From the NCBI GenBank assembly GCA_002269645.1, contig NIVC01000451.1, positions 1-17,747 on the forward strand: a DNA stretch of 17,747 nt. The letters run 5' to 3'. The stretch is from Macrostomum lignano. Taxonomy: Eukaryota. A program made the position numbers and the translations under genes. Shown here in pieces: positions 1 through 15,062 of this stretch. The notes beneath the pieces are model-generated. The model did no database searches. It saw only the letters and a program-made list of their open reading frames with translations, and was not told the DNA's origin. Position 1 is the stretch's first letter. Each line of letters starts with the position of its first letter.

Positions 1-105
1 AATTATTTCATTAATTAAACTTGGCATTGTTGAAAAAAATATGAATTTAAAACAACAACAACAACAAGCAGCCAAATCAAGCCAAGAAGAAATGAAACAC
101 CAATA

Positions 106-115
106 TTTATTTATT
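106..115 (-). terminator. Polyadenylation signal (two overlapping AATAAA) for RRP15
   Basis: Minus strand reads AATAAATAAA about 37 nt after the stop at 152, followed by T/GT-rich downstream sequence and no genomic poly(A) tract. Confidence 0.55.
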
Positions 116-151
116 AATAATGGTTATGATTATGATTATGAGCACACAGAA

Positions 152-1005
152 TCAGTCATCCTCATCCATTGGCTGCTCTGCATCCGAGGAGCCGCGCGGA
201 GGACTCGCGGTCCCAGTCCTTCATGCTCAGCGTGGGCTTCACCAAGTAGTCCTCGACAGGGCGCCCCACGACTTCTTCGCTTTCTTCTTCTGCTGCCGAT
301 CTTCTTCCGCAGAAGAAGACTCATTGTTGCCAGATTTGGATTTCGCTTTGTCTGTCGCCTTCCGCCGGCCGGCCAGCATGTCGAGGAAGTCGCCGCGCGA
401 CAGCGAGCTCAGCACCCGCTGCCTGCCCGCCTCCGAGCGCCCGGCCAGCCGTGACTCCAGCGAGCGCTGCTGCGCCCTGACGGCGTTGAACAGCTGCACA
501 ACTCCGCGGCAGGCGATTCGCTCCAGCTGGCGCTCCGCCTCGCGCTCGTTTGGCGCCGACAGCGGCTTGCGGCGCCCGCGCATAGCCAACGACGCCTCTC
601 AGCCGTCAGTTTCCTGCGCCGGCGGCCCAGATCGACATTGGAGTCCTCGGCGGCGTCGCCGGTGTCGGCAGTGGCGTTGGCGGCGGCCGGGGAGAACCGC
701 TGGCGGTCGGTGAGCGCCTTGGCCAGGATGGGGCAGGCGGGGGCGCGGGTCTGCAGCAGCAGGCCGCGGATGACGTTGGCCAGTCCGGCCGTTCCGCTCG
801 CCTCCGCGGATTTGCGCTTGCCGCGGGCCTTCGACTGGCCGGCGGCCGGCTTCTGCCGATCCGAGGAGGCGTCGCTGTCGCTGGCGATGTCCTCGACTTC
901 CTCCGCGTTGTCGTCTTCTTCGAGGTCCTGCTCTATCGTGACGCGAACCGCGGCCTGCGGCTGCTTTGAAGCGGCCGACGGCTTGGCTGAGGCGGCGACT
1001 CGCAT
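152..1005 (-). CDS. RRP15: RRP15-like ribosome biogenesis protein, single coding exon, interrupted by 2-3 single-base frameshifts (about 586, 256 and probably 195); assembly errors or a disabled copy
   Basis: Joining frames gives MRVAASAKPS...acidic tract...GLANVIRGLLLQTRAPACPILAKAL...ERRRW/AMRGRRKPLSAPNEREAERQLERIACRGVVQLFNAVRAQQ...LSRGDFLDML...KKSWGAL/EDYLVKPTLSMKDWDRESS/SSDAEQPMDEDD*. This matches the RRP15 motifs W-x-M-x-R-x-KP, IATRGVVQLFNAV, KxDF and W-x2-L-x-DD...MKDWD. ATG at 1005-1003 is preferred over 1050, which lies in the GATT repeat. Without the third shift the stop is at 162. Confidence 0.85.
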
Positions 1006-1020
1006 TGCTGGATTGAGGAG

Positions 1021-1330
1021 TGAGTGATTGACAGATTGATTGATTGACATATTGAACTAATTGACTGATTGATTGACAGATTGAACAGATTGGTTGATTG
1101 ACAGATTAAACTGAGTGATTGATTGATTGATTGGTTGATTGATTGACAGATTCAACTGAGTGATTGACAGATTCAACTGAGTGATTGACAGATTTAACTG
1201 AGTGATCAATGGATTGGTTGATTGACTGATTGATTGATTGACAGACTGATTTCATTGATAGGTTGATCACCAGAACTGATTTGACAAATTAAATTGATTA
1301 GTTGATTGATTGATAGATTTAATTTATTGA
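1021..1330. repeat. Degenerate (GATT)n / GATTGACA microsatellite between CYB561D2 and RRP15
   Basis: Runs of gattgatt, gattgaca and gattcaactgagt visible throughout. Confidence 0.9.
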
Positions 1331-1435
1331 TTAACTGATTTACAAACATATAGCCTAATTAAACCCAAATTGAAAATGGTAATTAAAAAAAACTGAAATC
1401 TCGTTCTTAACTTATCAAAGTTCATTTCAGCAGCC

Positions 1436-1441
1436 TTTATT
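1436..1441 (-). terminator. Candidate polyadenylation signal for CYB561D2
   Basis: Plus-strand tttatt (AATAAA on minus) about 200 nt downstream of the stop at 1639. Confidence 0.4.
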
Positions 1442-1638
1442 CTTATAAAATAGCTTATGTATTCTTTTTTGCTACTGAACTGAAAGTAGACAGCTGTTTT
1501 ACTAAGGATATATGCCTGAATGGCCTATCTACGAGACTAGTTATTTTAGTATCTGTGACCAATACTAACAATATGATTATTAATCAATTCCAACATTCAG
1601 AAACATGATGAAAAATCTAGCTATGCTTTTACAGTCGG

Positions 1639-2301
1639 TCACTTCTCCTTCTTAGCCCTGGCAGGCCTGCCGCTCGGCTTGCCGCTTGCAGCCTCCGCGC
1701 GCCCCTGCTGAGCGGTCAGCTTGGGCAGGTAGTGGTCGCACACCTGCTTGCACACGATGGAGCCCAGCATGAAGGCGGACACGAAGCAGGCGTACCAGGC
1801 TGTGCCAGTCACCTGCTTGCTGAACCAGTCGGACCACATGCCGCTAGCCAGGGCGGCGCAGGCGCAGGTGAACATGAAGGTGCCGCTGGTGGCGTGGTAC
1901 AGCTTCATGTCAGCGGGCCGGACTCCGCCCAGCTTCAGCCGGGTGCACACGCCGCCGATGCACTGCAGCAGCAGGTAGATGTTGCACAGGGCGCCAATCC
2001 AAGAGTGCCAGCTGGTCAGGTGCGGCCGGCCCTTCTCCTCCTTGCTGCGCCACACGAAGTAGCCGCCGGTTAAGGAGGCGCCCAGGGCCGCCCAGTTCAG
2101 CAGGGCGTGCGCGGTGGTCTGGCGTTCCCGGTTGCCAGCGAACAAAGACGACTGGCGGTTGAAGGACAGCACGCCTTGGAACAGCAGCAGGCCGAAGGCG
2201 ACCGACATGAGGGTTGGGTGCCAGCTGAATAGGCTGCTGCCCGGCTGGGCGATGTACACCAGGAAGCCCACCAGCAGGATGCACAGGAAGTGCGACACCA
2301 T
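1639..2301 (-). CDS. CYB561D2: Cytochrome b561 domain-containing transmembrane ferric reductase (CYB561D2/101F6-like), intact 220-aa single exon
   Basis: Motifs PGSSLFSWHPTLM, TAH, K-x3-G-x-P-H-L-T-S-W-H and KLYHATSG supply the four heme-ligand His. There are six hydrophobic segments and a C-terminal W-F-x3-VTG-x-AWY. About 20 aa shorter at the N-terminus than the vertebrate protein as I recall it; CAG acceptor 2 nt before the ATG. Confidence 0.92.
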   Translation of the reverse strand: MVSHFLCILLVGFLVYIAQPGSSLFSWHPTLMSVAFGLLLFQGVLSFNRQSSLFAGNRERQTTAHALLNWAALGASLTGGYFVWRSKEEKGRPHLTSWHSWIGALCNIYLLLQCIGGVCTRLKLGGVRPADMKLYHATSGTFMFTCACAALASGMWSDWFSKQVTGTAWYACFVSAFMLGSIVCKQVCDHYLPKLTAQQGRAEAASGKPSGRPARAKKEK

Positions 2302-2350
2302 GGCTGCGGGATGGGTGGGGCAGATTGGCTACGGTTGAAGGCTGCGCGGG

Positions 2351-3339
2351 GCAACTGAGGATCTGGGAGGCTGGCTCAGCAACTGACACTCTGGGAGGCT
2401 GGCCCAGCAACTGACACTCTGGGAGGCTGGCCCAGCAACTGACACTCTGGGAGGATGGCCCAGCAACTGAGAATCTGAGGGCTGGCCCAGCAACTGAGAA
2501 TCTGGGAGGCTGGCCCTGCAACTGACACTCTGGGAGGTTGGCCCAGCAACTGACACTCTGGGAGGCTGGCCCAGCAACTGACACTCTGGGAGGCTGGCCC
2601 TGCAAGTGGGGATCTGGGAGGCTGGCCCTGCAAGTGGGGATCTGGGAGGCTGGCCCTGCAACTGGGGATCTGGGAGGCTGGCCCAGCAACTGACACTCTG
2701 GGAGGCTGGCCCTGCAACTGGGGATCTGGGAGGCTGGCCCTGCAACTGACACTCTGGAGGCTGGCCCTGCAAGTGGGGATCTGGGAGGCTGGCCCTGCAA
2801 GTGGGGATCTGGGAGGCTGGCCCAGCAACTGAGGATCTGGGAGGCTGGCCCAGCAACTGACACTCTGGGAGGCTGGCCCTGCAAGTGGGGATCTGGGAGG
2901 CTGGCCCTGCAAGTGGGGATCTGGGAGGCTGGCCCAGCAACTGAGGATCTGGGAGGCTGGCCCAGCAACTGAGGATCTGGGAGGCTGGCCCAGCAACTGA
3001 GGATCTGGAGGCTGGCCCAGCAACTGACGCTCTGGGAGGCTGGCCCAGCAACTGACACTCTGGGAGGCTGGCCCAGCAACTGACACTTTGGGAGGCTGGC
3101 TCAGCAACTGACACTTTGGGAGGCTGGCTCAGCAACTGACACTCTGGGAGACTGGCCCAGCAACTGAGGATCTAGAAGGCTAGCCCAGCCCAGCAACTGA
3201 GGATCTGGGAGGCTGGCCCTGCAACTGACACTTTGGGAGGCTGGCCCAGCAACTGAGGATCTAGAAGGCTAGCCCAGCCCAGCAACTGAGGATCTGGGAG
3301 GCTGGCCTGGCAACTGGGAAACTGGTAGCCCAGCAACTA
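2351..3339. repeat. 28-bp minisatellite, about 35 copies
   Basis: Unit ctgggaggctggcccagcaactgacact, with variants ending ctgcaagtggggat or cagcaactgaggat; period 28 (e.g. 2401 and 2429). Confidence 0.95.
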
Positions 3340-4310
3340 AATGAGAAACAGTGAGACAAACATAATCTGAGTGACAAAGTGTCAGAAAAGATGTCAGCGG
3401 CATATAGCATAAAGACACATTTAATATCTGGGCAGTCGTGGTGAGCTGTGTAGGCATGCTAATCCACAATATCAGTGCATAAGCAGTGTGAAGAGCAAAG
3501 TGAAGAAGCGCCGCCGCAGCGGGTACATCTGAGTAAGACAGGGTATAACAAAGAGAATGAGTAAAGAATGGCATGCATAGCGCATTTGCACAATGCCCGT
3601 GAGCTGGGTTTAGTAGAGAATATTACAGCTAAGGAGAAATTGTACACAAAAATAGCTACAGACAGAAGCAATAAAACTGAATAAATCGTGAAAAATGAGG
3701 CCACAGGCTGGTTGTCAAATCAAAGCGAACTTGAATTCACTTCCATTCTACTGGCAGTAGCATTATAAAAGCCACCTTACTCTCTTATTGTGGTTAGAAA
3801 AGGAAAAAAAGACTGTAAAAAAGGGACAATAGACAGGTGAAAGTAAAAAAACTGATAAAACCAGGTATTGAACGGATTAGACTATGGAACTGGTTGTATC
3901 ACAATGCAATAAAAAAGTTCGCTAGTAGAGTTTAAGAACAGTAGAGGCAGCTACGTGACGCGAATAACGCAAGGACTACTACTATCAGTAGTCTGACTGG
4001 ACTTTCACCAGGTCAGCGAGTTCGAATTCTGGTGCATTCTAGTCGAAATATTTCGGCCTTCAAAACAATTCCTAGAAACGAAAAACGTCTCTTATCTTAA
4101 TTTTAGCTCGTATTGGTCCCTGCAATCAATGTCGAGATAATTTGGAAAGGCACGAACAGAGAGACTGCATGCTGGGTGAGACTGAGAAATAATCAGTCAG
4201 ATTCTGATTCCCGATATGTTGTGTAGACCACTTTTTTTGAAGTTCAGATACAAACAGGGAAGAATTTTTTTCTTGCTGTATTCATGTTTAAATTCTCGGC
4301 TCTTTCGTAC

Positions 4311-4690
4311 GGGGAATTCCCCGGTTAGGTAGGTGGGCTTGGAATTCCTTGGCATGGGGAATTCCCCGGTTAGGTAGGTGGGCCTGGAATTCCTTGGCAT
4401 GGGGAATTCCCCGGTTAGGTAGGTGGGCCTGGAATTCCTTGGCATGGGGAATTCCCCGGTTAGGTAGGTGGGCTTGGAATTCCTTGGCATGGGGAATTCC
4501 CCGGTTAGGTAGGTGGGCCTGGAATTCCTTGGCATGGGGAATTCCCCGCTTAGGTAGGTGGGCCTCGAATTCCTTGGCATGGGGAATTCCCCAGTTAGGT
4601 AGGTGGGCTTGGAATTCCCCGGTTCGATAGGCGGGCTAGGAATTCCTTGGCATGGGGAATTCCCCGGTTAGGTAGGTAGGCTAGGAGCTT
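4311..4690. repeat. 45-bp minisatellite, about 8 copies, downstream of the NHE stop
   Basis: Unit ggggaattccccggttaggtaggtgggcctggaattccttggcat starting at 4311, 4356, 4401, 4446, 4491, 4536 and 4581. Confidence 0.95.
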
Positions 4691-4907
4691 CTTGCAACGG
4701 GGGAAAGCAATTAATCGATACTGCAGGTAATCTCGGTGAGGGGGACATTATTTGTGTAGGAAAGAGAATTCCTCTGTAGGGAATATAATTCCTTTTTAAG
4801 CAGAAATTCTGAGTAGGGGGAATTTCCCAGATAGTTTGAAGAGTGCAGAGTCAAGGCAGGCATGACAGACAGACAGTTTCAGACCCGACTTCAGCCGGGC
4901 CATCGGC

Positions 4908-5214
4908 TCAGAACAGCACAGGCGAGGCCGCCCCGTTGTTGTCGGCGTCTCCGGTGGTGGCCACCTGCAGGGAGGCTGGCGCTGCCGGCCCCGCCTTGTT
5001 GACCTGGCCGCCTTCGCCCAGGCCGGCGAAGCTGTCGCTGTCTGGCGGCACTATCACGTCAGTGTCCTCCTGGCCGCCGGAGTACAGGTCCCGCTGCACA
5101 GCGGCCTGAGTCAGCTGCTCGGTGGTGGTGAGCAGGCGGGCCAGCGGCAGGCAGCAGCCGCTGCAGGTCTCCGTGAGCAGCGGCCGGGCGTTAGTGAGCA
5201 GCGGCTTCACGAAA
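4908..5214 (-). CDS. SLC9A6: NHE terminal coding exon (cytoplasmic tail)
   Basis: Acceptor ccgcag|t ttc gtg aag ccg; [36 protein letters not shown] matches the NHE6/7/9 tail motif; stop TGA at 4910-4908. Confidence 0.88.
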
Positions 5215-8200
5215 CTGCGGTGGAAATGCGGAGATGTGAGGGCTGATGAGACAGATTCTCAAGGACTGAGGCAGCGGAGAGGCAGATTCTCAAGGACTGA
5301 GGCAGCGGAGAGGCAGATTCTCAAGGACTGAGGCAGCGGAGAGGCAGATTCTCAAGGACTGAGGCAGCAGAGAGGCAGATTCTCAAGGACTGAGGCAGCG
5401 GAGAGGCAGATTCTCAAGGACTGAGGCAGCGGAGAGGCAGATTCTCAAGGACTGAGGCAGCGGAGAGGCAGATTCTCAAGGACTGAGGCAGCGGAGAGGC
5501 AGATTCTCAAAGACTGAGGCAGCGGAGAGGCAGATTCTCAAGGACTGAGGCAGCGGAGAGGCAGATTCTCAAGGACTGAGGCAGCGGAGAGGCAGATTCT
5601 CAAGGACTGAGGCAGCGGAGAGGCAGATTCTCAAAGACTGAGGCAGCGGAGAGGCAGATTCTCAAGGACTGAGGCAGCGGAGAGGCAGATTCTCAAGGAC
5701 TGAGGCAGCGGAGAGGCAGATTCTCAAGGACTGAGGCAGCGGAGAGGCAGATTCTCAAGGACTGAGGCAGCGGAGAGGCAGATTCTCAAGGACTGAGGCA
5801 GCGGAGAGGCAGATTCTCAAGGACTGAGGCAGCGGAGAGGCAGATTCTCAAGGACTGAGGCAGCGGAGAGGCAGATTCTCAAGGACTGAGGCAGCGGAGA
5901 GGCAGATTCTCAAGGACTGAGGCAGCGGAGAGGCAGATTCTCAAGGACTGAGGCAGCGGAGAGGCAGATTCTCAAGGACTGAGGCAGCGGAGAGGCAGAT
6001 TCTCAAGGACTGAGGCAGCGGAGAGGCAGATTCTCAAGGACTGAGGCAGCGGAGAGGCAGATTCTCAAGGACTGAGGCAGCGGAGAGGCAGATTCTCAAG
6101 GACTGAGGCAGCGGAGAGGCAGATTCTCAAGGACTGAGGCAGCGGAGAGGCAGATTCTCAAGGACTGAGGCAGCGGAGAGGCAGATTCTCAAGGACTGAG
6201 GCAGCGGAGAGGCAGATTCTCAAGGACTGAGGCAGCGGAGAGGCAGATTCTCAAGGACTGAGGCAGCGGAGAGGCAGATTCTCAAGGACTGAGGCAGCGG
6301 AGAGGCAGATTCTCAAGGACTGAGGCAGCGGAGAGGCAGATTCTCAAGGACTGAGGCAGCGGAGAGGCAGATTCTCAAGGACTGAGGCAGTGGAGAGGCA
6401 GATTCTGAGGCTGCGGAGGCAGATTCTCAAGGACTGAGGCAGTGGAGAGGCATATTCTCAAGGACTGAGGCAGCGGAGAGGCAGATTCTGAGGCAGCAAA
6501 CATAAAAAGCTCACTTCTTGTCAATCTTCCGCCATCCCAATGCAATGCAAGACCTGTCGCGCAGGCTCGGCTGGGAAGCCGCCTGTAAAAAATAAAAAAT
6601 ATGAAATTGCAGAGACAGACTAAACATTGGCATGACAAAAAAACTCAAAGAAATCGCAGTTACGAACCTCCCCTGTGGAGTCTTGCCGGTCAAGACGCTG
6701 ACGATTTGGTTCCTCTTCAACTCCAACTCTGCGATGCAAGTGAATATGAATTATGAGCGCGCAATGGTTAACAGTCATTGAGCATGGTACACACAGTATG
6801 CTCTTATGTACACTCAAATTCAGGACAGCTTGTGGAGGTGTTGACAGTCAGTTCTATTTGTACGCCCGTATTTGAAAACAAAGCAGAATGGGGTGTACCT
6901 GTGTACACCCTAACCTAGAACACGTTGAGTTGGCGATTTGCACCCCATAGCTAACTGACAGTTAAACTTAGGCGTCTTCTGAGCCTCTAAAAGTGTTCAA
7001 AGTGTGCTCAAGACGGCAGAAATCAATGATCTTAAATAGGTCGAGAGGTTCTGAACACAGAGCAGATGTTCTTGGATGGCTGATCTTTTAGTCCCATGAT
7101 CCTTGACCCCAGTGTACAGATGTATAAGTGTACAGATGTATAAGTGTACAGATGTATAAGTGTACAGATGTATAAGTGTACAGATGTATAAGTGTACAGA
7201 TGTATAAGTGTACAGATGTATAAGTGTACAGATGTATAATTGTACATATGTATAAGTGTACAGATGTATAAGTGTACAGATGTATAAGTGTACAGATGTT
7301 ATAAGTGTACAGATGTTATAATTGTACAGATGTATAAGTGTACAGATGTATAAGTGTACAGATGTATAAGTGTACAGATGTTATAAGTGTACAGATGTAT
7401 AAGTGTACATATGTATAAGTGTACAGATGTATAATTGTACAGATTTTATGAGTGTACAGATGTATAAGTGTACAGGTGTATAAGTGTACAGATGTATAAG
7501 TGTACAGATGTTATAAGTGTACAGATGTATAAGTGTACATATGTATAAGTGTACAGATGTATAATTGTACAGATTTTATGAGTGTACAGATGTATAAGTG
7601 TACAGGTGTACAAGTGTAAAGATGTACAAGTGAACAAGTGTACAGGTGTACAAGTGTACAAGGTTTTTTCCAACGCCACCTGCAGGAAGTGACCGAGGGA
7701 CACGAGACTGCAAGCAGAAGGACCCCCCTGGCCGCAGGCTTACTCAATGTGCATCCACTGCAGCATCTGGGTGGCGAGGCCGCCGCACACCAGCACGGTG
7801 ATCATGACCAGGATGAGAGTGGTAGAGAAGATGATCTTCCTGGCATCCGATGAGGTGTTCCGAATGGCCAGGGCGAACGCCATGGCGCCCCGCAGGCCGG
7901 AGAAGGCCAGCACGTGCATCCGGGACAGCCCGATGGCGCAGCCGCTGCGCCTGCGGCCAATATTGGCCAGGCCGCACAGGGGGTAGACGCACAGCACCCT
8001 GCCGATGATCATAGCCAGGAATCCCGCCACAATGAACACCGGGTCCCACAGGTGCGAGCTGTAGGTGAACACGCTGACCCCGATGTACACAAAGGTGAAA
8101 TTTTCAGCTAGAAAATTCAACAGGCCAAAGAATGACATTGTGGTGGCCTTGGACTCGTCAGACAGGTTGTTATAGGTGTAGTGCGCCTGGCAGATGCCGC

Positions 8201-11200
8201 AGAACAGCACGGCCACAATGCCGGTGCTCTTCACCGCCTCGGCCGCCAGGAAGGTGCTGTAGCTCATCAGCACGAACAGGCTGGTCTCCAGCAGCGGGTG
8301 CTCGCGGACCTGGGCAATGGGTGAGCCAGGCTTTGAATTTGAAATAGTAGAAACCCAGATAGTGGCCTCTGGAACCTGCTCATAATCAACTTTTCGGATC
8401 CCGCATTTTTAAATCCCACAGGGATCAGTAGCCTGATTCTCCCGAAATCCTCACAGTGGGATCAGTAGCCTTATTCTCCCGAAATCCCTACAGTGGGATC
8501 AGTAGCCTGATTCTCCCGAAATCCTCACAGTGGAATCAGTAGCCTGATTCTCCCGAAATCCTCACAGTGGGATCAGTAGCCTGATTCTCCCGAAATCCTC
8601 ACAGTGGGATCAGTAGCCTGATTCTCCCGAAATCCTCACAGTGGGATCAGTAGCATGATTCTCACGAAATCCTCACAGTGGGATCAGTAGCATGATTCTC
8701 CCGAAATTCCTACAGTGGTATCAGTAGCATGATTCTCCCGAAATCCTCACAGTGGGATCAGTAGCCTGATTCTCCCGAAATCCTCACAGTGGGATCAGTA
8801 GCATGATTCTCCCGAAATTCCTACAGTGGGATCAGTAGCCTGATTCTCCCGAATTCCTCACAGTGGGATCAGTAGCCTGATTCTCCCGAAATCCTCACAG
8901 TGGGATCAGTAGCCTGATTCTCCCGAAATCCTCACAGTGGGATCAGTAGCCTGATTCTCCCGAAATCCTCACAGTGGGATCAGTAGCAGGATTCTCCCGA
9001 AATCCTCACAGTGGGATCAGTAGCATGATTCTCCCGAAATTCCTACAGTGGGATCAGTAGCCTGATTCTCCCGAATTCCTCACAGTGGGATCAGTAGCCT
9101 GATTCTCCCGAAATCCTCACAGTGGGATTAGTAGCCTGATTCTCCCGAAATCCTCACAGTGGGATCAGTAGCATGATTCTCTTGAAATCCCCACAGTGGA
9201 ATCAGTAGCATGATTCTCCCGAAATCCCCACAGTGGAATCAGTAGCATTGTTCTCCCAAATCCTCAGTGGGATCAGTGATGACTCTTAAAGAAATCCCAC
9301 AGTGGGATCGGAAATGACTCTTATAGAAATCCCACAGTGGGATCAGTAGCCTTATTCTCCCGAAATCCTCACAGTGGGATCAGTAGCCTGATTCTCCCGA
9401 AATCCTACAGTGGGATCAGAGATGACTCTTCTCTTTCCAAAACGCTCACCCGAGACTCACCTGCGTGAACTTGGTGATGAGGGCGGTGAGGCAGCCCAGC
9501 AGGCAGCCGATGCCGATGGCGCCAAGGAACACCCCGGCGAAGCTGCCGATGGCCTTCAGCACGGAGATGGCGGCGGTCTCTCCGGCCGCCGCGGCCGAAC
9601 CGTAGGTCTCGATAGACTCGGACAGCACTATGGCAACGGCGTCGTTAAGGACGCTTTCGCCGAATACGAGAGCGTAGAGATCGGGCTCGACGCGGAGGTC
9701 GCTGAATATTGCCAGGACGGTGACTGGAAGGATGCGATGAAAACAAAGGCTTGCCTGACTTGACAGCACATCAGATGCCGATGGCAAAGAAGCGGTTTTA
9801 AAAATTCTCACCCGGATCGGTGGCCGATATGAAGGCGCCGAACAGGAGGCACTCGCTGAGGCTGACGATCGAGGCGAGCCTGGCGCTGGCCCGGCTGATG
9901 CCGAATGTCACGCCGCTGCGGGAGTTCAACGGCGATTTGGGAGAACAGTTGGGATCTGGGATGAGGCAGACTCTATGGTAGGGGTTTGCAGAAGAGAGAT
10001 GGGAATGGGATAAGAGAAGGGATTAGAGAAAAGATAAATGAGGGAGAGAAGAGAGGAGGGAGAAGGGAAAAGAGAGCAGACAGAGGAGAGGGGAGAAAGA
10101 GAGCTTAGAAGAGACATAAACCTTGAGCAGGCCGGGCCGGATTGCTATTGTGAACTTTCAAAAGTCAGGAGGGTCGAAGTTTTCCAACCCCTGCTCTATG
10201 GGGATCAGGGATGAGGGAGTCTATATGGGGATCAGGGATGAGGGTGTCTATATAGGGATCAGGAATGAGGGTTTCTATATGGGGATCAGGGATGATGGTG
10301 TCTATATGGGGATCAGGGATGATGGTGTCTATATGGGGATCAGGGATGAGGGAGTGTATATGGGGATCAGGGATGAGGAAGTGTATATGGGGATCAGGGA
10401 TGAGGGAGTGCATATGGGGATCAGGGATGAGGGAGTCTATATGGGGATCAGGAATGATGGTGTCTATATGGGGATCAGGGATGAGGGAGTGTATATGGGG
10501 ATCAGGGATGAGGGAGTGCATATGGGGATCAGGGATGAGGGAGTCTATATGGGGATCAGGGATGAGGGAGTCTATATGGGGATCAGGGATGAGGGTGTCT
10601 ATATGGGGATCAGGAATGATGGTGTCTATATGGGGATCAGGGATGATGGTGTCTATGTGGGGATCAGGAATGATGGTGTCTATATGGGGATCAGGGATGA
10701 GGGAGTGCATATGGGGATCAGGGATGAGGGAGTCTATATGGGGATCAGGGATGAGGGAGTGTATATGGGGATCAGGGATGAGGGAGTGCATATGGGGATC
10801 AGGGATGAGGGAGTCTATATGGGGATCAGGGATGAGGGAGTGCATATTGGGATTAGGGATGAGGGAGTCTATATGGGTATCAGGGATGATGGTGTCTATA
10901 TGGGGATCAGGAATGAGGGAGTATTGCAAATCTGGAGTCAATTTATGAAATCAAAGATGCAGTTCAAAAGTGACAGATCAGATGAAATCCAAGAAACATG
11001 GGTTGCTGAACTCACCGATAACAAAGCACGATATGGTGGTGCCAAGAAATGCCAGCATCAGAATCGAGCCAATATTGCGAAAGAAGTGTTTCTGGAACAA
11101 TAATGTGGGCTTTAAATTTATTGCTTGTAAAAGCTGTAAGCATAATCTGATCAATGACGTTTTGAAAGCCTCATAGTGGGATTGGGGTCATGCGATGGGA

Positions 11201-11784
11201 TTTAAGGGACCTGCAAGCGTCGTGTCATGAAGGCACATTGGAAACATCATGAAGGCACATTGGGGACGTCATGAGGGCACATTGGAAACATCATGAAGGC
11301 ACATTGGGGACGTCATGAAGGCACATTGGAAACATCATGAAGGCACATTGGGGACGTCATGAAGGCACATTGGAAACATCATGAAGGCACATTGGAAACA
11401 TCATGAAGGCACATTGGGGACGTCATGAAGGGACATTGGGAACGCCATGGAGATGGGGATGCATGGAGATTGGGGACGCCATCCTCACCCTCTTCATGCT
11501 GAAGCCGGCAAAGAAGATGATGGGTGGCAGTATGAAGTTGAAAAACACTTCGGGATTAAACGTCGCCTTCTCGTCTAAAATCGGGGCGTTGATATCGTTG
11601 CCATAGAGACGCCGCTTATAATCGTACTCGTAGATTTGCGATTCGTTCAGAACGGACATGTTGACGAGGACTTTCTCCGGCGGCAGCTTGTTAGACTGCT
11701 CGGGTGAGTCCTCGATAGAGATCATTGTGATGCTAGGCTGGTAGCTGGGAGAGCCGTAGCGAATGATAACGCCAACTATGAGAC
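4908..11784 (-). CDS. SLC9A6: Endosomal sodium/hydrogen exchanger, NHE6/7/9 (SLC9A6/7/9) clade; 5'-incomplete multi-exon gene. Exons: 11489-11784, 11016-11091, 9812-9915, 9461-9723, 7744-8309, 6668-6728, 6515-6582, 4908-5214
   Basis: Spliced translation gives [11 protein letters not shown]...[26 protein letters not shown]|[25 protein letters not shown]|GVTFG...[13 protein letters not shown]|VTVLAIF...[16 protein letters not shown]...ITKFTQ|[12 protein letters not shown]...[13 protein letters not shown]...MLQWMHIE|VGV...|WRKIDKN|FVKPLLT...[11 protein letters not shown]. All introns are GT-AG and all phases are consistent except at 9915. About 580 codons. The symbol denotes the clade, not 1:1 orthology. 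Confidence 0.93.
5252..6495. repeat. 31-bp minisatellite, about 40 nearly identical copies, filling an NHE intron
   Basis: Unit ggactgaggcagcggagaggcagattctcaa; period 31 (5261, 5292...); only scattered single-base variants. Confidence 0.97.
6515..6582 (-). CDS. SLC9A6: NHE exon (68 bp)
   Basis: tttttacag|GCG...GAC AAG AA|gtgagc; [22 protein letters not shown](N). Confidence 0.85.
6668..6728 (-). CDS. SLC9A6: NHE exon (61 bp)
   Basis: catcgcag|A GTT GGA GTT...GGG GAG|gttcgt; [20 protein letters not shown], matching the conserved I-x-VGV junction. Confidence 0.8.
7111..7661. repeat. 16-bp minisatellite, about 34 copies
   Basis: Unit agtgtacagatgtata; period 16 (7111, 7127, 7143). Confidence 0.96.
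7744..8309 (-). CDS. SLC9A6: NHE exon (566 bp; C-terminal transmembrane helices)
   Basis: gcccag|GTC CGC GAG...ATT GA|gtaagc; includes [29 protein letters not shown] and [15 protein letters not shown]. Confidence 0.95.
8415..9422. repeat. 37-bp minisatellite, about 27 copies
   Basis: Unit cacagtgggatcagtagcctgattctcccgaaatcct; period 37 (8526, 8563). Confidence 0.96.
9461..9723 (-). CDS. SLC9A6: NHE exon (263 bp)
   Basis: ccttccag|TC ACC GTC...ACG CAG|gtgagt; contains the ion-binding [14 protein letters not shown] motif. Confidence 0.95.
9812..9915 (-). CDS. SLC9A6: NHE exon (104 bp; acceptor appears one base out of phase)
   Basis: tcccgcag|C GGC GTG ACA TTC...GAT CCG G|gtgaga; [17 protein letters not shown]. 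Confidence 0.85.
9990..10118. repeat. Purine-rich (GA) low-complexity tract
   Basis: Almost exclusively A/G on the plus strand (gagagaagagagg...); pyrimidine-rich in the NHE pre-mRNA. Confidence 0.8.
10195..10922. repeat. 27-bp G-rich minisatellite, about 27 copies
   Basis: Unit tatatggggatcagggatgagggagtc with variants; produces the spurious GIRDEGVYM repeat ORF. Confidence 0.96.
11016..11091 (-). CDS. SLC9A6: NHE exon (76 bp), not shown in the ORF track
   Basis: ttgttccag|AAA CAC TTC TTT CGC AAT...GTT ATC G|gtgagt; [25 protein letters not shown]. Confidence 0.93.
11226..11445. repeat. 22-bp minisatellite, 10 copies, two alternating variants
   Basis: A = catgaaggcacattggaaacat, B = catgaaggcacattggggacgt; order ABABABAAB plus one degenerate copy. 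Confidence 0.93.
11489..11784 (-). CDS. SLC9A6: Most 5' NHE exon in the window (296 bp; an internal exon)
   Basis: ccaacccag|GT CTC ATA GTT GGC...AAG AGG|gtgagg; begins in phase 1 at [11 protein letters not shown], so an upstream exon is required. Confidence 0.92.
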
Positions 11785-12734
11785 CTGGGTTGGAGATAGG
11801 ACAGAGTGTACTTTAGTTTTGAATCATTAGCCATGATGGCTGGGTTCATTTTTTCGGAGTTTTTGGAGTTTTTTTCGGGTTCATTTTTGCATCCAGGTGC
11901 CAATTGCTAGGTGGCACCTGGATGCACCTGGATGGGGTTCAAAATTCACTTTTCATTTTTAATTTAATGCTAACTTTGTAAGTCTATCTGAGACTTTTTG
12001 TTAAGTAATTGTTAGTGATTCTCAATATTAATATAAACTATCCTATGCCATTAAGTTTGTATACAGTCCACCACTGTCATTAATTGAATTAGTAGAAACA
12101 GAAATGATAAATTTCCATGTAATTCACGGCCTGCGAGCTCAGAGTGAATTTTATCTAGCATGGACAAGTGGAGAAAATTTGCAGCAAAAAAGTACCAGCT
12201 CTGAATTTGAATACCAGAAATTCATCTCCAAACTTTCTCGGCTGGCAACTTCAAGTACACACATGAGTCAATGAACAGTTATTTAACCTTTTTTTACATA
12301 TCTATAGTGAACATCCACTGCTTAAAAACCAACTGCTACGGCATGAAATATTGTGGGTTTAAGGAAAATCGATTCTTAATAGCAACGAGCATAGACACCT
12401 GTTTGAGTTTTCACTTTACATACATAAATTTTGACCAAATAAGACCAATTTAGCAGTAAAGATTGGTTATGAGTACCAAAGTCTGGCAGGAACAAGTTTT
12501 GAAACTCGTTACTTTCAAATTATTAACGGTAGCAAAATACGGCTAGCCGAAACGCCAGATAAAAAATCCACCAGAAGATCTTCGAGTAAGGAACTGGAAC
12601 TGGTGCAGATAAAAGCGGACAATCCAACAAGCCGTCAGAGTTAACAAGCTAAGAACTGTCAATGAATGTCAAAAAAGATTCGCACCAGCGATACGCCCAA
12701 TCGTGTGAACTCGACAGTCTTTTCTTTGATAGTC

Positions 12735-12972
12735 TATATATGCAAGTCTGATTTAAGATGCCATCTCCAATTAACAAAAACTCATAAGCCGACAGTAACC
12801 GAATTCGAAGAGCGCAACTCCAGTAACAAGTAAGTTTCGTCGACAATAATTTCCATTCTTCCTTTTTAAAAATAAAACAAATCAATATTCTACTCTCTAC
12901 TCAATAAGTGGATAGTAGCACAGTAAGCGCAATATAACTATTTTGCATTCCAATTACTACGAATATTCACAG
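12735..12972 (+). promoter_or_regulatory. Candidate TATA box, short non-coding exon and 5'-UTR intron of the small secreted-peptide gene
   Basis: ctatatat at about 12734-12741; donor aa|gtaagt at 12830 (alternative ca|gtaagc at 12923); acceptor tattcacag| at 12971-12972, one base before the ATG. Confidence 0.4.
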
Positions 12973-12973
12973 A

Positions 12974-13255
12974 ATGAAGGCCGTCATTGCTCTTCTGTGC
13001 CTCGTGGCCGTGGCCTCCGCTGCATACACCCCCGCCCAGCGTGAGGAGGTCCTGGATGACCTCGTCCACGAGATTGTGCCCTTCCTGTCTGTGGACTGGA
13101 ACTGCGTCAAGAACGCCGGCATCTCCAGCTCTATGTGCATCCTGAAGAACCTCATCAGCTGCGGCGTGGCCATCAAGCCGCCGCTCATCGCTGTCTGCCT
13201 GGTTGCCAGCTGCGGCGGAGACGCTGCCAAGCTGGCGTACTGCATCAAGCTGTGA
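12974..13255 (+). CDS. 93-aa secreted cysteine-rich peptide precursor of unassigned family (signal peptide, acidic pro-region, six-Cys domain)
   Basis: MKAVIALLCLVAVASA is a typical signal peptide. It is followed by acidic AYTPAQREEVLDDLVHE and a domain with spacing C-X10-C-X7-C-X11-C-X4-C-X9-C. The ORF is a GC-rich island with C/G-ending codons like the other genes, set in AT-rich flanks. Confidence 0.85.
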   Translation: MKAVIALLCLVAVASAAYTPAQREEVLDDLVHEIVPFLSVDWNCVKNAGISSSMCILKNLISCGVAIKPPLIAVCLVASCGGDAAKLAYCIKL

Positions 13256-13475
13256 AGCTGGCAATGCCCCTTACATTGCTTTAAAAATAGTCGACTAAAT
13301 ATATATTAATTCGACAAGTACAGCTTATATTGCAGCTTTCGTCTTAGGCTTCTTTAATTATGATAACAATCGAAAATTCATGATGACAGACTAATAGCAT
13401 ACAAATATCTCAATCTGAGCTACAATTTAGCTCGTAGTAAACCCTGAAAATGTTCAAATTTTCGGAGCTCATTTA

Positions 13476-15062
13476 CGATGACTGATTAGTGCTCAATAAG
13501 TTCGCGAAAAAAACACTTTTAAAATATTCTGGCACTAATTTTTTTCCGCATATACCCCCATCTAATGAGACTTCTCAACGTAGTTTCCAGACAGATTGAT
13601 GCATTTCTTCATCTGATGAAACCAATGCTGTAAAACAGTCCCTCAATTTCACCTGAGCTCTGCTCTCAGCTCCTCTTCGAGCTCCTTGCGAGAGTCAAAG
13701 TGCTTTCCTTTGAGATTCTTCTTGATATCTTCGAGAAGAGGAAGAAGTCCGCTAAGAAGTCTTTGGCCGCTCCTGACATAACAAAATGGGAAGAGGTGAA
13801 AGCAATGAACAAGAACACGGTCATGCCAAGGGACCAAACAGGACGGCAAACAGAGAACAGATACTGCACCATCTGCAACAGAGAGTTCAAGACTCACACG
13901 GGACTGAAGATACACAACACCAGGATGCATCGAGAACAGAGACAAGAGGAGAAGAAGTTCCCAAGATGCGGAGACATCCTAAACAACAAGGCCAGCGAGA
14001 CGAACCACCTTTAGATCTGTAAAGGCGCCCTGAAAGGGACATGCCCGTACTGTCTCCAGCCCAGGAGCGCCAGCAACATGGCGAGGCACATACGCAACTG
14101 TGCGCAGTACAATGACCTACAAACAGGGTACCAACAAGAAGAAGAGGACCAAGACGCCTACACGACGGACAGGCCTGAACCAACCGACGCACCGAGAAGA
14201 GCGAAGATTGCTTGCCCGGGCTGCAGCAAGAGCATCTCGAAGACAAATATAGCAAGACACCGGAAAGTCTGCACCGCGGAACCGACTCAAAGCCAATGAG
14301 TGGCATGCCTCATAGGAGGTCGAATTGTCATATAAGGACAAGGACAAGGCCGCTCCTGAGAGAGTAACTTCAGCACCTGCGGTGAGCAGACACCTGAGTA
14401 CCAGTTACCAGTCACTGTGGCACCTTCCTCGAATAGGATGGGTAGCAGAATGCCACACCGCATGCTGCCAAGACCTTGCCGACACTCGTAGGAATTTGAC
14501 AGGGGCATCCTCTTCGAAGGCGATCCCCTGCCTGCTCTGGAATTTTGTCTCTGAGAAGTACACCCATGTTTCATCACCTGTCAGGATGTTGTCCACCAAT
14601 AATTTCGAAGCCCCCTTGTCAAATTTGTTGAGCATGAAGGTTGCGAACTCAATATGAACTTGCATCTGGGTTGGGTTCAGGTGATGGTTACCCAGCGCCC
14701 GGATACTTTCACTCGTCGATCTTCCTCAATTAGCCACTGCTGCCTCCTGACCAACTTGTATACCATTGTATGGATGAGGCTTCATCACTCAGGGCTTGTT
14801 GAAGCAGTGTCTGCATGCATTCGGAGGCAGACTGGCCAAGTCGAAACTGGACAAGAATTGCGACTCCTCTGTCACACATGGTCAATCAAGTGCAGTAAAG
14901 ATTATTAAGTTGCATCACTTTTCAGCCACTGCATCGCAGAATCTCAGTCAAAGATGCTGAAAATCTACATGAAATGTTTTAACATTGTATGAAATAAACA
15001 AACTTCAGTATATTTGCATGGAAAGGAGATTCATTTTTTGCGAACTTATTAAGCAGCTCTTG
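13476..15062 (-). mobile_element. Decayed, internally deleted mariner (Tc1/mariner DD34D-type) transposon
   Basis: Imperfect TIRs share tgctcaataagttcgcgaaaaaaa (13490-13513) and ttttttgcgaacttattaagca (15034-15055), with flanking TA at 13474-13475 and 15063-15064. Transposase remnants on minus from the ATG at 14879: FRLGQSASECMQTL, LIEEDRRV, WV(P)HHL, NILTGDETWVYF, GATVTGNWY...QERP, DFFLFSKIKKNLKGKHF, W-x3-MKKCINLSGNYVEK* (stop at 13562). Multiple frameshifts and stops; the HDNA-YSPDLAP segment is missing. Confidence 0.9.
13777..14347 (+). mobile_element. 5'-truncated non-LTR retrotransposon 3' end inserted in the mariner; encodes four zinc fingers
   Basis: Exact 12-bp direct repeat ggccgctcctga at 13765-13776 and 14348-14359; removing the insert restores mariner QERPKT. 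The insert ends in a 48-bp 3' UTR with a (GGACAA)2 tail. One reading frame runs to the stop at 14297-14299 with one C2H2 finger and three C2HC fingers, and carries an internal TAG at 14012-14014. Confidence 0.75.

Follow-up and report, generated by a model that had tools for sequence, protein, structure and literature searches.

The stretch analysed here (hereafter the window) is the whole of contig NIVC01000451.1, 17,747 nucleotides from assembly GCA_002269645.1 of Macrostomum lignano, a flatworm. At 12974..13255 on its plus strand it contains an open reading frame (ORF) that runs intact from ATG to TGA as a single exon of 93 codons plus the TGA. An earlier annotation made from the letters of the DNA (the sequence-only reading) had proposed here an orphan gene for a secreted six-cysteine peptide. 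The ORF listing and the sequence confirmed that the ORF is intact, that its 93 amino acids are identical to those noted and that its cysteines are spaced C-x10-C-x7-C-x11-C-x4-C-x9-C. With high confidence we regard the ORF as a coding gene of an M. lignano six-cysteine family, because its codon usage is frame specific, its GC content at third codon positions (GC3) reaches 0.84 within flanks of 37% GC, and its homologues keep the six cysteines. The homologues also begin and end where the ORF does, as would be the case for a complete single-exon coding sequence (CDS) of a small, predicted secreted protein.

The GC content at the first, second and third codon positions is 0.585, 0.426 and 0.84, respectively, and GC3 values of 0.71-0.91 were obtained for the coding sequences of the neighbouring cytochrome b561, Na+/H+ exchanger (NHE) and Rrp15 genes. 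The low GC content given above applies to both 500-bp flanks. When codon usage was scored as log-odds, with the b561 and NHE exons of the contig as training set, only the frame of the ORF came out positive (+0.54, compared to −0.03 to −1.19 in the other five frames), which bears out the gene-like codon bias noticed earlier. The length of the ORF by itself is compatible with chance, since the window contains 30 ORFs of at least 90 amino acids; codon bias and homology set this one apart. Two long antisense ORFs overlap it and are an expected by-product of the high GC3. An accidental ORF arising from a GC-rich patch or a repeat might be argued from the 30 long ORFs and the two antisense frames, but it is refuted by the frame-specific codon signal and by significant homologues with aligned cysteines, leaving it a negligible probability. 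No paralogue of the protein was found elsewhere in the window.

Upstream of the ORF, a TATA-like element (TATATA, 12735..12740, plus strand) marks a candidate promoter. The last two ATGs preceding the ORF, at 12740 and 12758, lie at or just past this element, and the 213 nt in front of the start codon are free of ATG (P ~0.045 at the local ATG density). A candidate intron in the 5′ untranslated region (5′-UTR), recognized by its motifs only, would extend over 12830..12972 on the plus strand, from GTAAGT (12830) to CAG (12970-12972). The AG at 12971-12972, two bases 5′ of the ATG, could equally serve as a trans-splice acceptor for a spliced leader, as 38.8% of M. lignano genes are trans-spliced (PMC5730564). 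The TATA box and 5′-UTR intron that the sequence-only reading had assigned to the gene are thus present as motifs and have the rank of candidates. Downstream of the ORF, candidate A/T-rich motifs resembling poly(A) signals are located at 13283..13303 on the plus strand, 28-45 nt past the stop codon (AAAAATA at 13283 and AATATA at 13298), and comparable TAAAAATA is present after the stop codon of a paralogue at locus L003, described below.

The deposited gene listing covers window 1..12301, and hence would not include a model close to the six-cysteine ORF; it comprises three models on the minus strand: an Rrp15p-like gene (~239-583), cytochrome b561 with 220 amino acids (1639-2301) and NHE with 560 amino acids (4908-11725), which stops 1.25 kb short of the six-cysteine ORF. 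The NHE model is 5′-truncated. Its first exon on the contig occupies 11489-11785 (minus strand), and the reading frame continues upstream of the model ATG to an acceptor, ctgtcctatctccaacccag|GT, at ~11786, thereby encoding a conserved membrane segment. A human NHE6 probe, entered by hand, aligned to this exon from GLLVGLVLRYG onward. Given the clean 3′ splice site and the point at which this alignment starts, the N-terminal membrane segments must sit in an upstream exon. Between 11787 and 17747 such an exon was detected neither by motif search nor by tblastn with the NHE6 N-terminus (likewise entered by hand) nor as a GC island, the only GC islands in this interval being the 93-aa ORF and a transposon-like block at 13650-14900. 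When full-length paralogues were sought from the NHE exon by word-indexed search, no candidates appeared. Of the proposal that the six-cysteine gene is nested antisense in NHE intron 1, the opposite strands and the implied upstream exon stand, but no such exon is found on the contig and the number of the intron has no support. If the upstream exon is located beyond the contig end, a nested position is plausible, and the NHE intron around the ORF would measure at least 6 kb; if this NHE copy is merely truncated, the genes would be neighbours in divergent orientation, separated by 1.2 kb.

Exons of the contig are GC-rich, and its introns are AT-rich and full of minisatellites. In and near the NHE gene, arrays with units of 28, 45, 31, 16, 37, 27 and 22/44 bp were observed at 2351-3316, 4311-4618, 5248-6489, 7111-7652, 8421-9419, 10197-10922 and 11224-11449, respectively, with up to 40 copies and 87-97% identity; they give rise to the long repetitive pseudo-ORFs of the ORF list. 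The GC-richer block at 13650-14900 includes a C2H2 zinc-finger-like ORF (13700-14014, plus strand) with weak, sub-threshold Pfam matches, and a minus-strand fragment, '...ILTGDETWVYF...', which we take to resemble mariner/Tc1 transposase. No transposase match to Pfam was obtained in this block, which is suspected to be a transposon remnant.

Paralogues and environmental relatives

A word-indexed search with the 93-aa protein returned only the protein itself, an entry that forms a singleton in UniRef/MetaClust. The family was revealed by an exhaustive phmmer search of this single sequence against 1.84 billion representatives, which yielded the M. lignano proteins P0002 (E = 7e-19), P0003 (2e-10) and P0005 (7e-9) as well as the environmental protein P0006 (2.6e-4). 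P0003 is a fused gene model of 979 amino acids, the query aligning to its residues 103-182. A profile search brought in further members (P0008, P0009 and P0010; Mlig001791, Mlig013012 and others), and by cluster look-ups at least 15 GenBank paralogue models ('hypothetical protein BOX15_Mlig...') were found on at least 10 contigs. Named members are BOX15_Mlig001791, Mlig013012, Mlig029556, Mlig018888, Mlig000320, Mlig004736 and others (e.g., PAA78713.1, PAA46646.1 and PAA59846.1), and the M. lignano paralogues are 43-48% identical to the window protein. The phmmer match to P0004, a repeat protein of a soil read set, was dropped as spurious, and NuoA fragments in cluster 1 were rejected as clustering artefacts. 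The gene is consequently no orphan, as had been claimed. By sequence comparison, its product is a solitary, divergent paralogue in an uncharacterised, lineage-restricted multigene family of small secreted six-cysteine proteins. The family is not new to the databases, where it is already deposited as M. lignano hypothetical proteins.

The paralogues are partly amplified in tandem. At the end of contig NIVC01000671.1 (locus L005, 1511-13405), four full copies and one partial copy lie in a 13 kb stretch at distances of ~3.5-4.3 kb, with Mlig001791-like and Mlig013012-like subtypes intermixed. Locus L003 carries two copies, one of them frameshifted, and loci L004 and L006 carry one apiece. The frameshifted copy (L003, 1715-1997) is located 4 kb upstream of Mlig013012g1, with the frameshift between the first and second cysteine, and is either a pseudogene or the result of a long-read indel error. 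DNA similarity of the window to the paralogue loci L005 and L006 is restricted to the CDS. Since the GenBank models of the M. lignano assembly derive from a genome-guided transcriptome (PMC5730564), the paralogues must be transcribed.

Ten family sequences, two of them environmental, were compared. A16, T19, P36, C44, C55, C63, A73, C75, C80, G81, A84 and C90 are invariant, and S39 is nearly so. The homologues start at the same methionine, followed by the signal peptide, and end at the same C-I-K-L before the stop codon; the C-terminal pattern of the family as a whole, C-[IF]-[KH]-[LIR], holds for the window protein too. One difference concerns the loop between the third and fourth cysteine, which has 11 residues in the window protein and in the environmental relatives but 13 in the other aligned M. 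lignano copies.

The environmental relatives are found on a single 949-bp contig (L002; JGI 3300030741, Ga0265459_10766186), which is AT-rich and carries two copies at 157-775. They are arranged head-to-head, 31 bp apart, and have eight cysteines each. Their link to the family is supported by the single-sequence E-value of 2.6e-4, by a local tblastn value of ~1e-8 and by alignment of all six cysteines; the later profile E-value for P0006 is circular, as P0006 itself is part of the profile. The minus-strand copy shows no ATG at its called start, so that a separate exon may supply its first codons or the 5′ ends of both copies may overlap. Two metagenome scans gave no matches to further relatives, and the known environmental contig was not recovered by them either. 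No mention of the JGI sample was found in paper texts.

Layout and predicted structure of the protein

The N-terminus of the window protein consists of MK, the hydrophobic stretch AVIALLCLVAV and A-S-A in front of AYT. This fits a signal peptide of residues 1-16 (12974..13021, plus strand) with predicted cleavage between A-S-A and A-Y-T according to the −3/−1 rule, as read from the sequence, and agrees with the signal peptide proposed before. A hydrophobic N-terminus followed by AAYT is kept in all M. lignano paralogues. The predicted mature protein has 77 amino acids, a mass of 8.2 kDa, an isoelectric point (pI) of 5.6 and a grand average of hydropathy (GRAVY) of +0.68; six lysines and arginines are set against seven aspartates and glutamates, resulting in a net charge of about −1. 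Across the family, pI values range from 4.4 to 6.9 and GRAVY values from +0.19 to +0.68.

Two parts follow the signal peptide, a conserved acidic N-terminal segment (residues 17-40; 13022..13093, plus strand) and the hydrophobic six-cysteine domain (residues 41-93; 13094..13252, plus strand) with C44, C55, C63, C75, C80 and C90. T19 and P36 are invariant in the first part; in the second, A73, G81 and A84 are invariant in addition to the cysteines. We take residues 17-40 to be a putative first helix of the mature protein rather than a propeptide, because the segment has no processing site, is conserved like the cysteine domain and is predicted to be helical (residues 20-34). In the sequence-only reading it had been taken for an acidic spacer of a prepropeptide, from which cleavage would release a 53-aa antimicrobial or toxin peptide of cationic type. 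The order of signal peptide, acidic stretch (five D/E in 24-33) and cysteine-rich domain indeed resembles such a precursor, but residues 17-44 contain no KR, RR or RxxR and hence offer no dibasic or furin-type site ahead of C44, the spacer is conserved (S39 nearly as strictly as T19 and P36) and predicted to be helical, the cysteine domain lacks a cationic character, and the pI of the mature protein as a whole is acidic. The prepropeptide is therefore very improbable. CaaX prenylation at the C-terminal CIKL was also considered and rejected: the protein carries a signal peptide, lysine occupies the a2 position, one environmental relative ends in CFHR and C90 belongs to the invariant cysteine set.

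AlphaFold predicted an all-helical protein with helices at 20-34, 42-47, 53-66, 69-80 and 84-88. The predicted local distance difference test (pLDDT) score was 55.8 without an alignment and 62.3 with an alignment of seven sequences. Beta content was limited to at most two isolated two-residue bridges, with no strand of three or more residues. The conserved cysteines in the ten sequences and the helical prediction support the earlier view of a small, helical, six-cysteine secreted protein. Foldseek comparison of the pLDDT 62.3 model with the PDB gave a best E-value of 3.9 and listed no saposin, although a model of this quality is too weak for negative statements on the fold.

The environmental relatives provide a hint on the disulfide pattern. 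Their extra cysteine pair corresponds to window positions 48 and 86, each located four residues inward of C44 and C90, and every mature family sequence analysed has an even number of cysteines. The sums of the paired positions are nearly constant (44 + 90 = 48 + 86 = 134, 55 + 80 = 135 and 63 + 75 = 138). As the extra pair and the equal sums match an antiparallel helix register stapled twice, with a nested hairpin inside, the disulfides are most likely nested, that is C44-C90, C55-C80 and C63-C75.

Evolution, expression and probable role

Substitution rates were estimated by the method of Nei and Gojobori from small counts. Between Mlig001791-type and Mlig013012-type copies, the synonymous rate (dS) was 0.11-0.20 and the non-synonymous rate (dN) 0.15-0.17, corresponding to dN/dS of ~1.0-1.4 in seven out of eight pairs and 0.79 in the eighth. 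These values reflect ~6-11 synonymous and 30-33 non-synonymous changes, with every cysteine kept. Within subtypes dN/dS was 0.3-0.7. The window gene compared to the others gave dS 0.64-0.77, dN 0.53-0.61 and dN/dS 0.7-0.9, and the two environmental copies gave dS 0.52, dN 0.24 and dN/dS 0.46. These values indicate fast evolution of the protein around fixed cysteines and are not proof of positive selection, although the ratios of 1.0-1.4 between subtypes could result from diversifying selection.

Expression values were taken from the supplementary files of Brand et al. 2020 (PMC7336406), a re-analysis of positional RNA-seq of four body fragments; the rows with low-numbered gene IDs were used. 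This was the only source among the supplements searched in which a family member was found, and no mention of family gene IDs or accessions was found in paper texts. In these rows, Mlig000320.g3 and Mlig000320.g4 each have a CDS of 288 nt, and g4 corresponds to the 95-aa family member P0022. Counts across the four fragments are 3790/7938/5935/3873 for g3 and 3806/7806/5528/3575 for g4, compared to 2-273 in neighbouring table rows (PMC7336406). In the same rows both genes are classified as 'Non-Specific' over the head, testis, ovary and tail regions, carry no germline or neoblast annotation and show no response to social group size (adjusted P 0.33-0.85). For this pair at least, expression is high along the whole body, which fits a secretion of the gut or of epidermal/gland cells and argues against a prostate/seminal, gonadal or tail-gland product. 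The seminal and gland-specific options of the sequence-only reading find no backing there.

The same data bear on the possibility that the proteins serve reproduction or communication, as components of seminal fluid or of an egg or sperm coat or as pheromones, and evolve quickly by sexual selection. The family is lineage-restricted, secreted and tandemly duplicated, with dN/dS of ~1 between subtypes, a profile described as typical of Macrostomum reproduction-related genes in PMC7336406. Nevertheless, the expression classes, annotations and P values listed there for Mlig000320.g3/g4 speak against it, and a reproductive role appears improbable. Another interpretation sees the proteins as structural or packing components of an abundant secretion, be it epidermal mucus, rhabdites or a further gland product of the whole body, in which case they would not themselves act on lipids or membranes. 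The very high counts of the paralogue pair in every fragment listed, including the head-only one, would be in keeping with this, as would a small, hydrophobic, disulfide-locked protein and a tandem amplification that fits the demand for a bulk product. However, the sequence has no repeats, low-complexity stretches or glycosylation-rich region, and dN/dS near 1 is unusual for structural proteins; we consider a purely structural role unlikely, though still worth keeping in mind.

A further question concerns the window copy itself, which might be a silent or decaying paralogue within a real family. It has no transcript-derived GenBank model although three other genes on the contig are annotated, it is solitary and off the tandem clusters, it is the most divergent M. 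lignano member (dN ~0.53-0.61), and the frameshifted copy at L003:1715-1997 provides a precedent. On the other hand, the missing model is weak evidence, because transcripts with low RPKM (reads per kilobase per million) or overlapping repeats were removed from the GenBank annotation (PMC5730564). Moreover, neutral decay would erode a GC3 of 0.84 amid 37% GC. The intact ORF, the retention of all family-invariant residues, the high GC3 and the leader free of upstream ATGs over 213 nt argue that the window copy is functional. Its expression is a prediction, and a silent copy is rather unlikely, somewhat more so than the purely structural role.

In the explanation that we favour, removal of the 16-residue signal peptide would leave a 77-aa, 8.2-kDa, mildly acidic and very hydrophobic protein of about five short helices, a cysteine-free acidic helix being followed by four that bear the six invariant cysteines. 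With the disulfides C44-C90, C55-C80 and C63-C75, the two halves of the domain, N-terminal and C-terminal, would be stapled together in antiparallel orientation. The protein would be secreted in abundance by somatic cells of the gut or by epidermal/gland cells and would act extracellularly, most likely serving defence or digestion by binding lipids or membranes as saposin-like proteins do. The chances of the combined statement, an intact gene for a divergent family member that is a somatic lipid- or membrane-binding secretory protein, seem to us about even. Taken by itself, a role of the family proteins as somatic secretory effectors that act through lipid or membrane binding is a tentative suggestion by analogy. 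Less probable still, and rather speculative, is a wider reading in which they represent an undescribed, disulfide-laddered helical fold unrelated to saposins, a somatic membrane-active defence or digestive effector diversifying under positive selection; jointly with this, and at the same low probability, somatic secretory cells of macrostomid flatworms, and one or more environmental organisms, might produce such a protein in large amounts.

Several points weigh against the favoured explanation. Lipid or membrane binding is argued only from hydrophobicity and analogy. SapB_1 and SapB_2 were absent in Pfam searches of seven family members at E-values up to 10, and hhalign against human saposins A-D gave a probability of 0.2%. 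The structure model is weak (pLDDT 62, seven sequences), so that a helical bundle or a saposin-like shape is a prediction only. A dN/dS near 1 may also mean relaxed constraint, and it comes from small counts and from dS values reduced by strong codon bias. The expression evidence comes from a paralogue ~46% identical to the window protein and not from the window gene. Finally, the window protein had no exact match among called genes, including the GenBank models of the assembly, and, in line with its singleton status in UniRef/MetaClust, no other protein found exceeds 48% identity to it.

As M. lignano is a flatworm model in which transgenesis is established, the six-cysteine family is open to direct study. 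It is abundant, secreted by prediction and lineage-restricted, with a cysteine framework and sequence that have no described match. If membrane-active, the proteins would provide a new scaffold for invertebrate innate defence or digestion and an example of the speed of effector evolution (dN/dS ~1, tandem arrays); should the undescribed fold be real, they would form a new class of invertebrate host-defence protein. If their role is only packing or structural, the gain would be one of routine annotation, namely a missing gene model on NIVC01000451.1. Further gains for the annotation are the corrected 5′-truncated NHE model and the doubt cast on the label 'saposin B-type' of two paralogues. In general, taxon-restricted, cysteine-rich secreted families are common.

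Comparison with known protein families

The cysteine framework and sequence match no described family among Pfam, PDB sequences and Foldseek, in agreement with the corresponding claim of the sequence-only reading. Pfam searches with the window protein and six relatives gave sub-threshold noise only, and phmmer against PDB chain sequences (E up to 10) gave no match to the window protein. The family profile, when compared to PDB chains, returned only weak matches to SecB (E = 0.004) and one fluorescent protein. Both matches were judged to be due to chance, SecB being a bacterial cytosolic chaperone devoid of disulfides. The resemblance to the Histoplasma calcium-binding protein CBP suggested before receives no support from sequence, since the phmmer and profile searches of the PDB gave nothing beyond these two proteins; CBP was covered through the PDB chain search and its own sequence was not used as a query. 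A misfit to defensin, macin and knottin patterns had been noted correctly: Pfam gave no match, and the prediction is almost wholly helical with no strand of three or more residues.

Helical hairpins with paired disulfides resemble the environmental relatives in one respect. Twin CX3C/CX9C proteins and alpha-hairpinins are defined by C-x3-C pairs in antiparallel register, and the outer C-x3-C ... C-x3-C pair of the environmental relatives shows the same arrangement. In contrast, the second cysteine of each CX3C is missing from the window protein and from every M. lignano copy, and in the six-cysteine family a 37-residue segment with four more cysteines lies between the motifs. Twin-CX3C/CX9C proteins are located in mitochondria and are not secreted, and alpha-hairpinins are peptides of plants. 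Sequence similarity was found to neither group. Lineage-restricted, fast-evolving, secreted helical mini-proteins with three disulfides are also represented by the Euplotes pheromones and Aplysia attractin. These differ in size (~40-58 amino acids) and in their cysteine frameworks, no PDB sequence match links them to the family, and their role as signals is unlike the very high body-wide expression of the Mlig000320 pair.

Saposin-like proteins (SAPLIP) include saposins A-D, NK-lysin, surfactant protein B and the saposin-like proteins of the flatworm gut. SAPLIP and the six-cysteine family have in common a size of ~80 amino acids, secretion, a predicted all-helical structure, hydrophobicity and six cysteines; nesting of the SAPLIP type (1-6, 2-5, 3-4) is predicted for the six-cysteine family from the arguments given above. 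The saposin framework is C-x2/3-C, ~27 residues, C-x10/11-C, ~24 residues and C-x5-C, with cysteines in the first helix. Accordingly, the aligned sequences of human saposins A-D, which were entered by hand for the hhalign comparison, have invariant cysteines at positions 4, 7, 35, 47, 73 and 79. The window protein differs in its spacing of 10/7/11/4/9 and in a first helix free of cysteines. The misfit to the saposin pattern that had been recorded earlier is thus confirmed by spacing and by the hhalign result. By the features compared, the window protein is not a member of the saposin family, and the likeness supports only the guess that it works like one. Two paralogues, A0A267DBX8 (P0010) and A0A267D9N1 (P0022), carry the automatic UniRef name 'Saposin B-type domain-containing protein'. 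This label was not reproduced by Pfam or by the profile comparison with human saposins.

A likeness in all parts of the protein was observed to the hypothetical proteins of M. lignano. Although the window copy is solitary and has no GenBank gene model, whereas its relatives on L005 form a tandem cluster, it shares with the family a predicted signal peptide ending in AAYT, the conserved acidic helix, P36, six cysteines in register, the C-G-G motif, the C-terminal C-I-K-L and a single-exon CDS.

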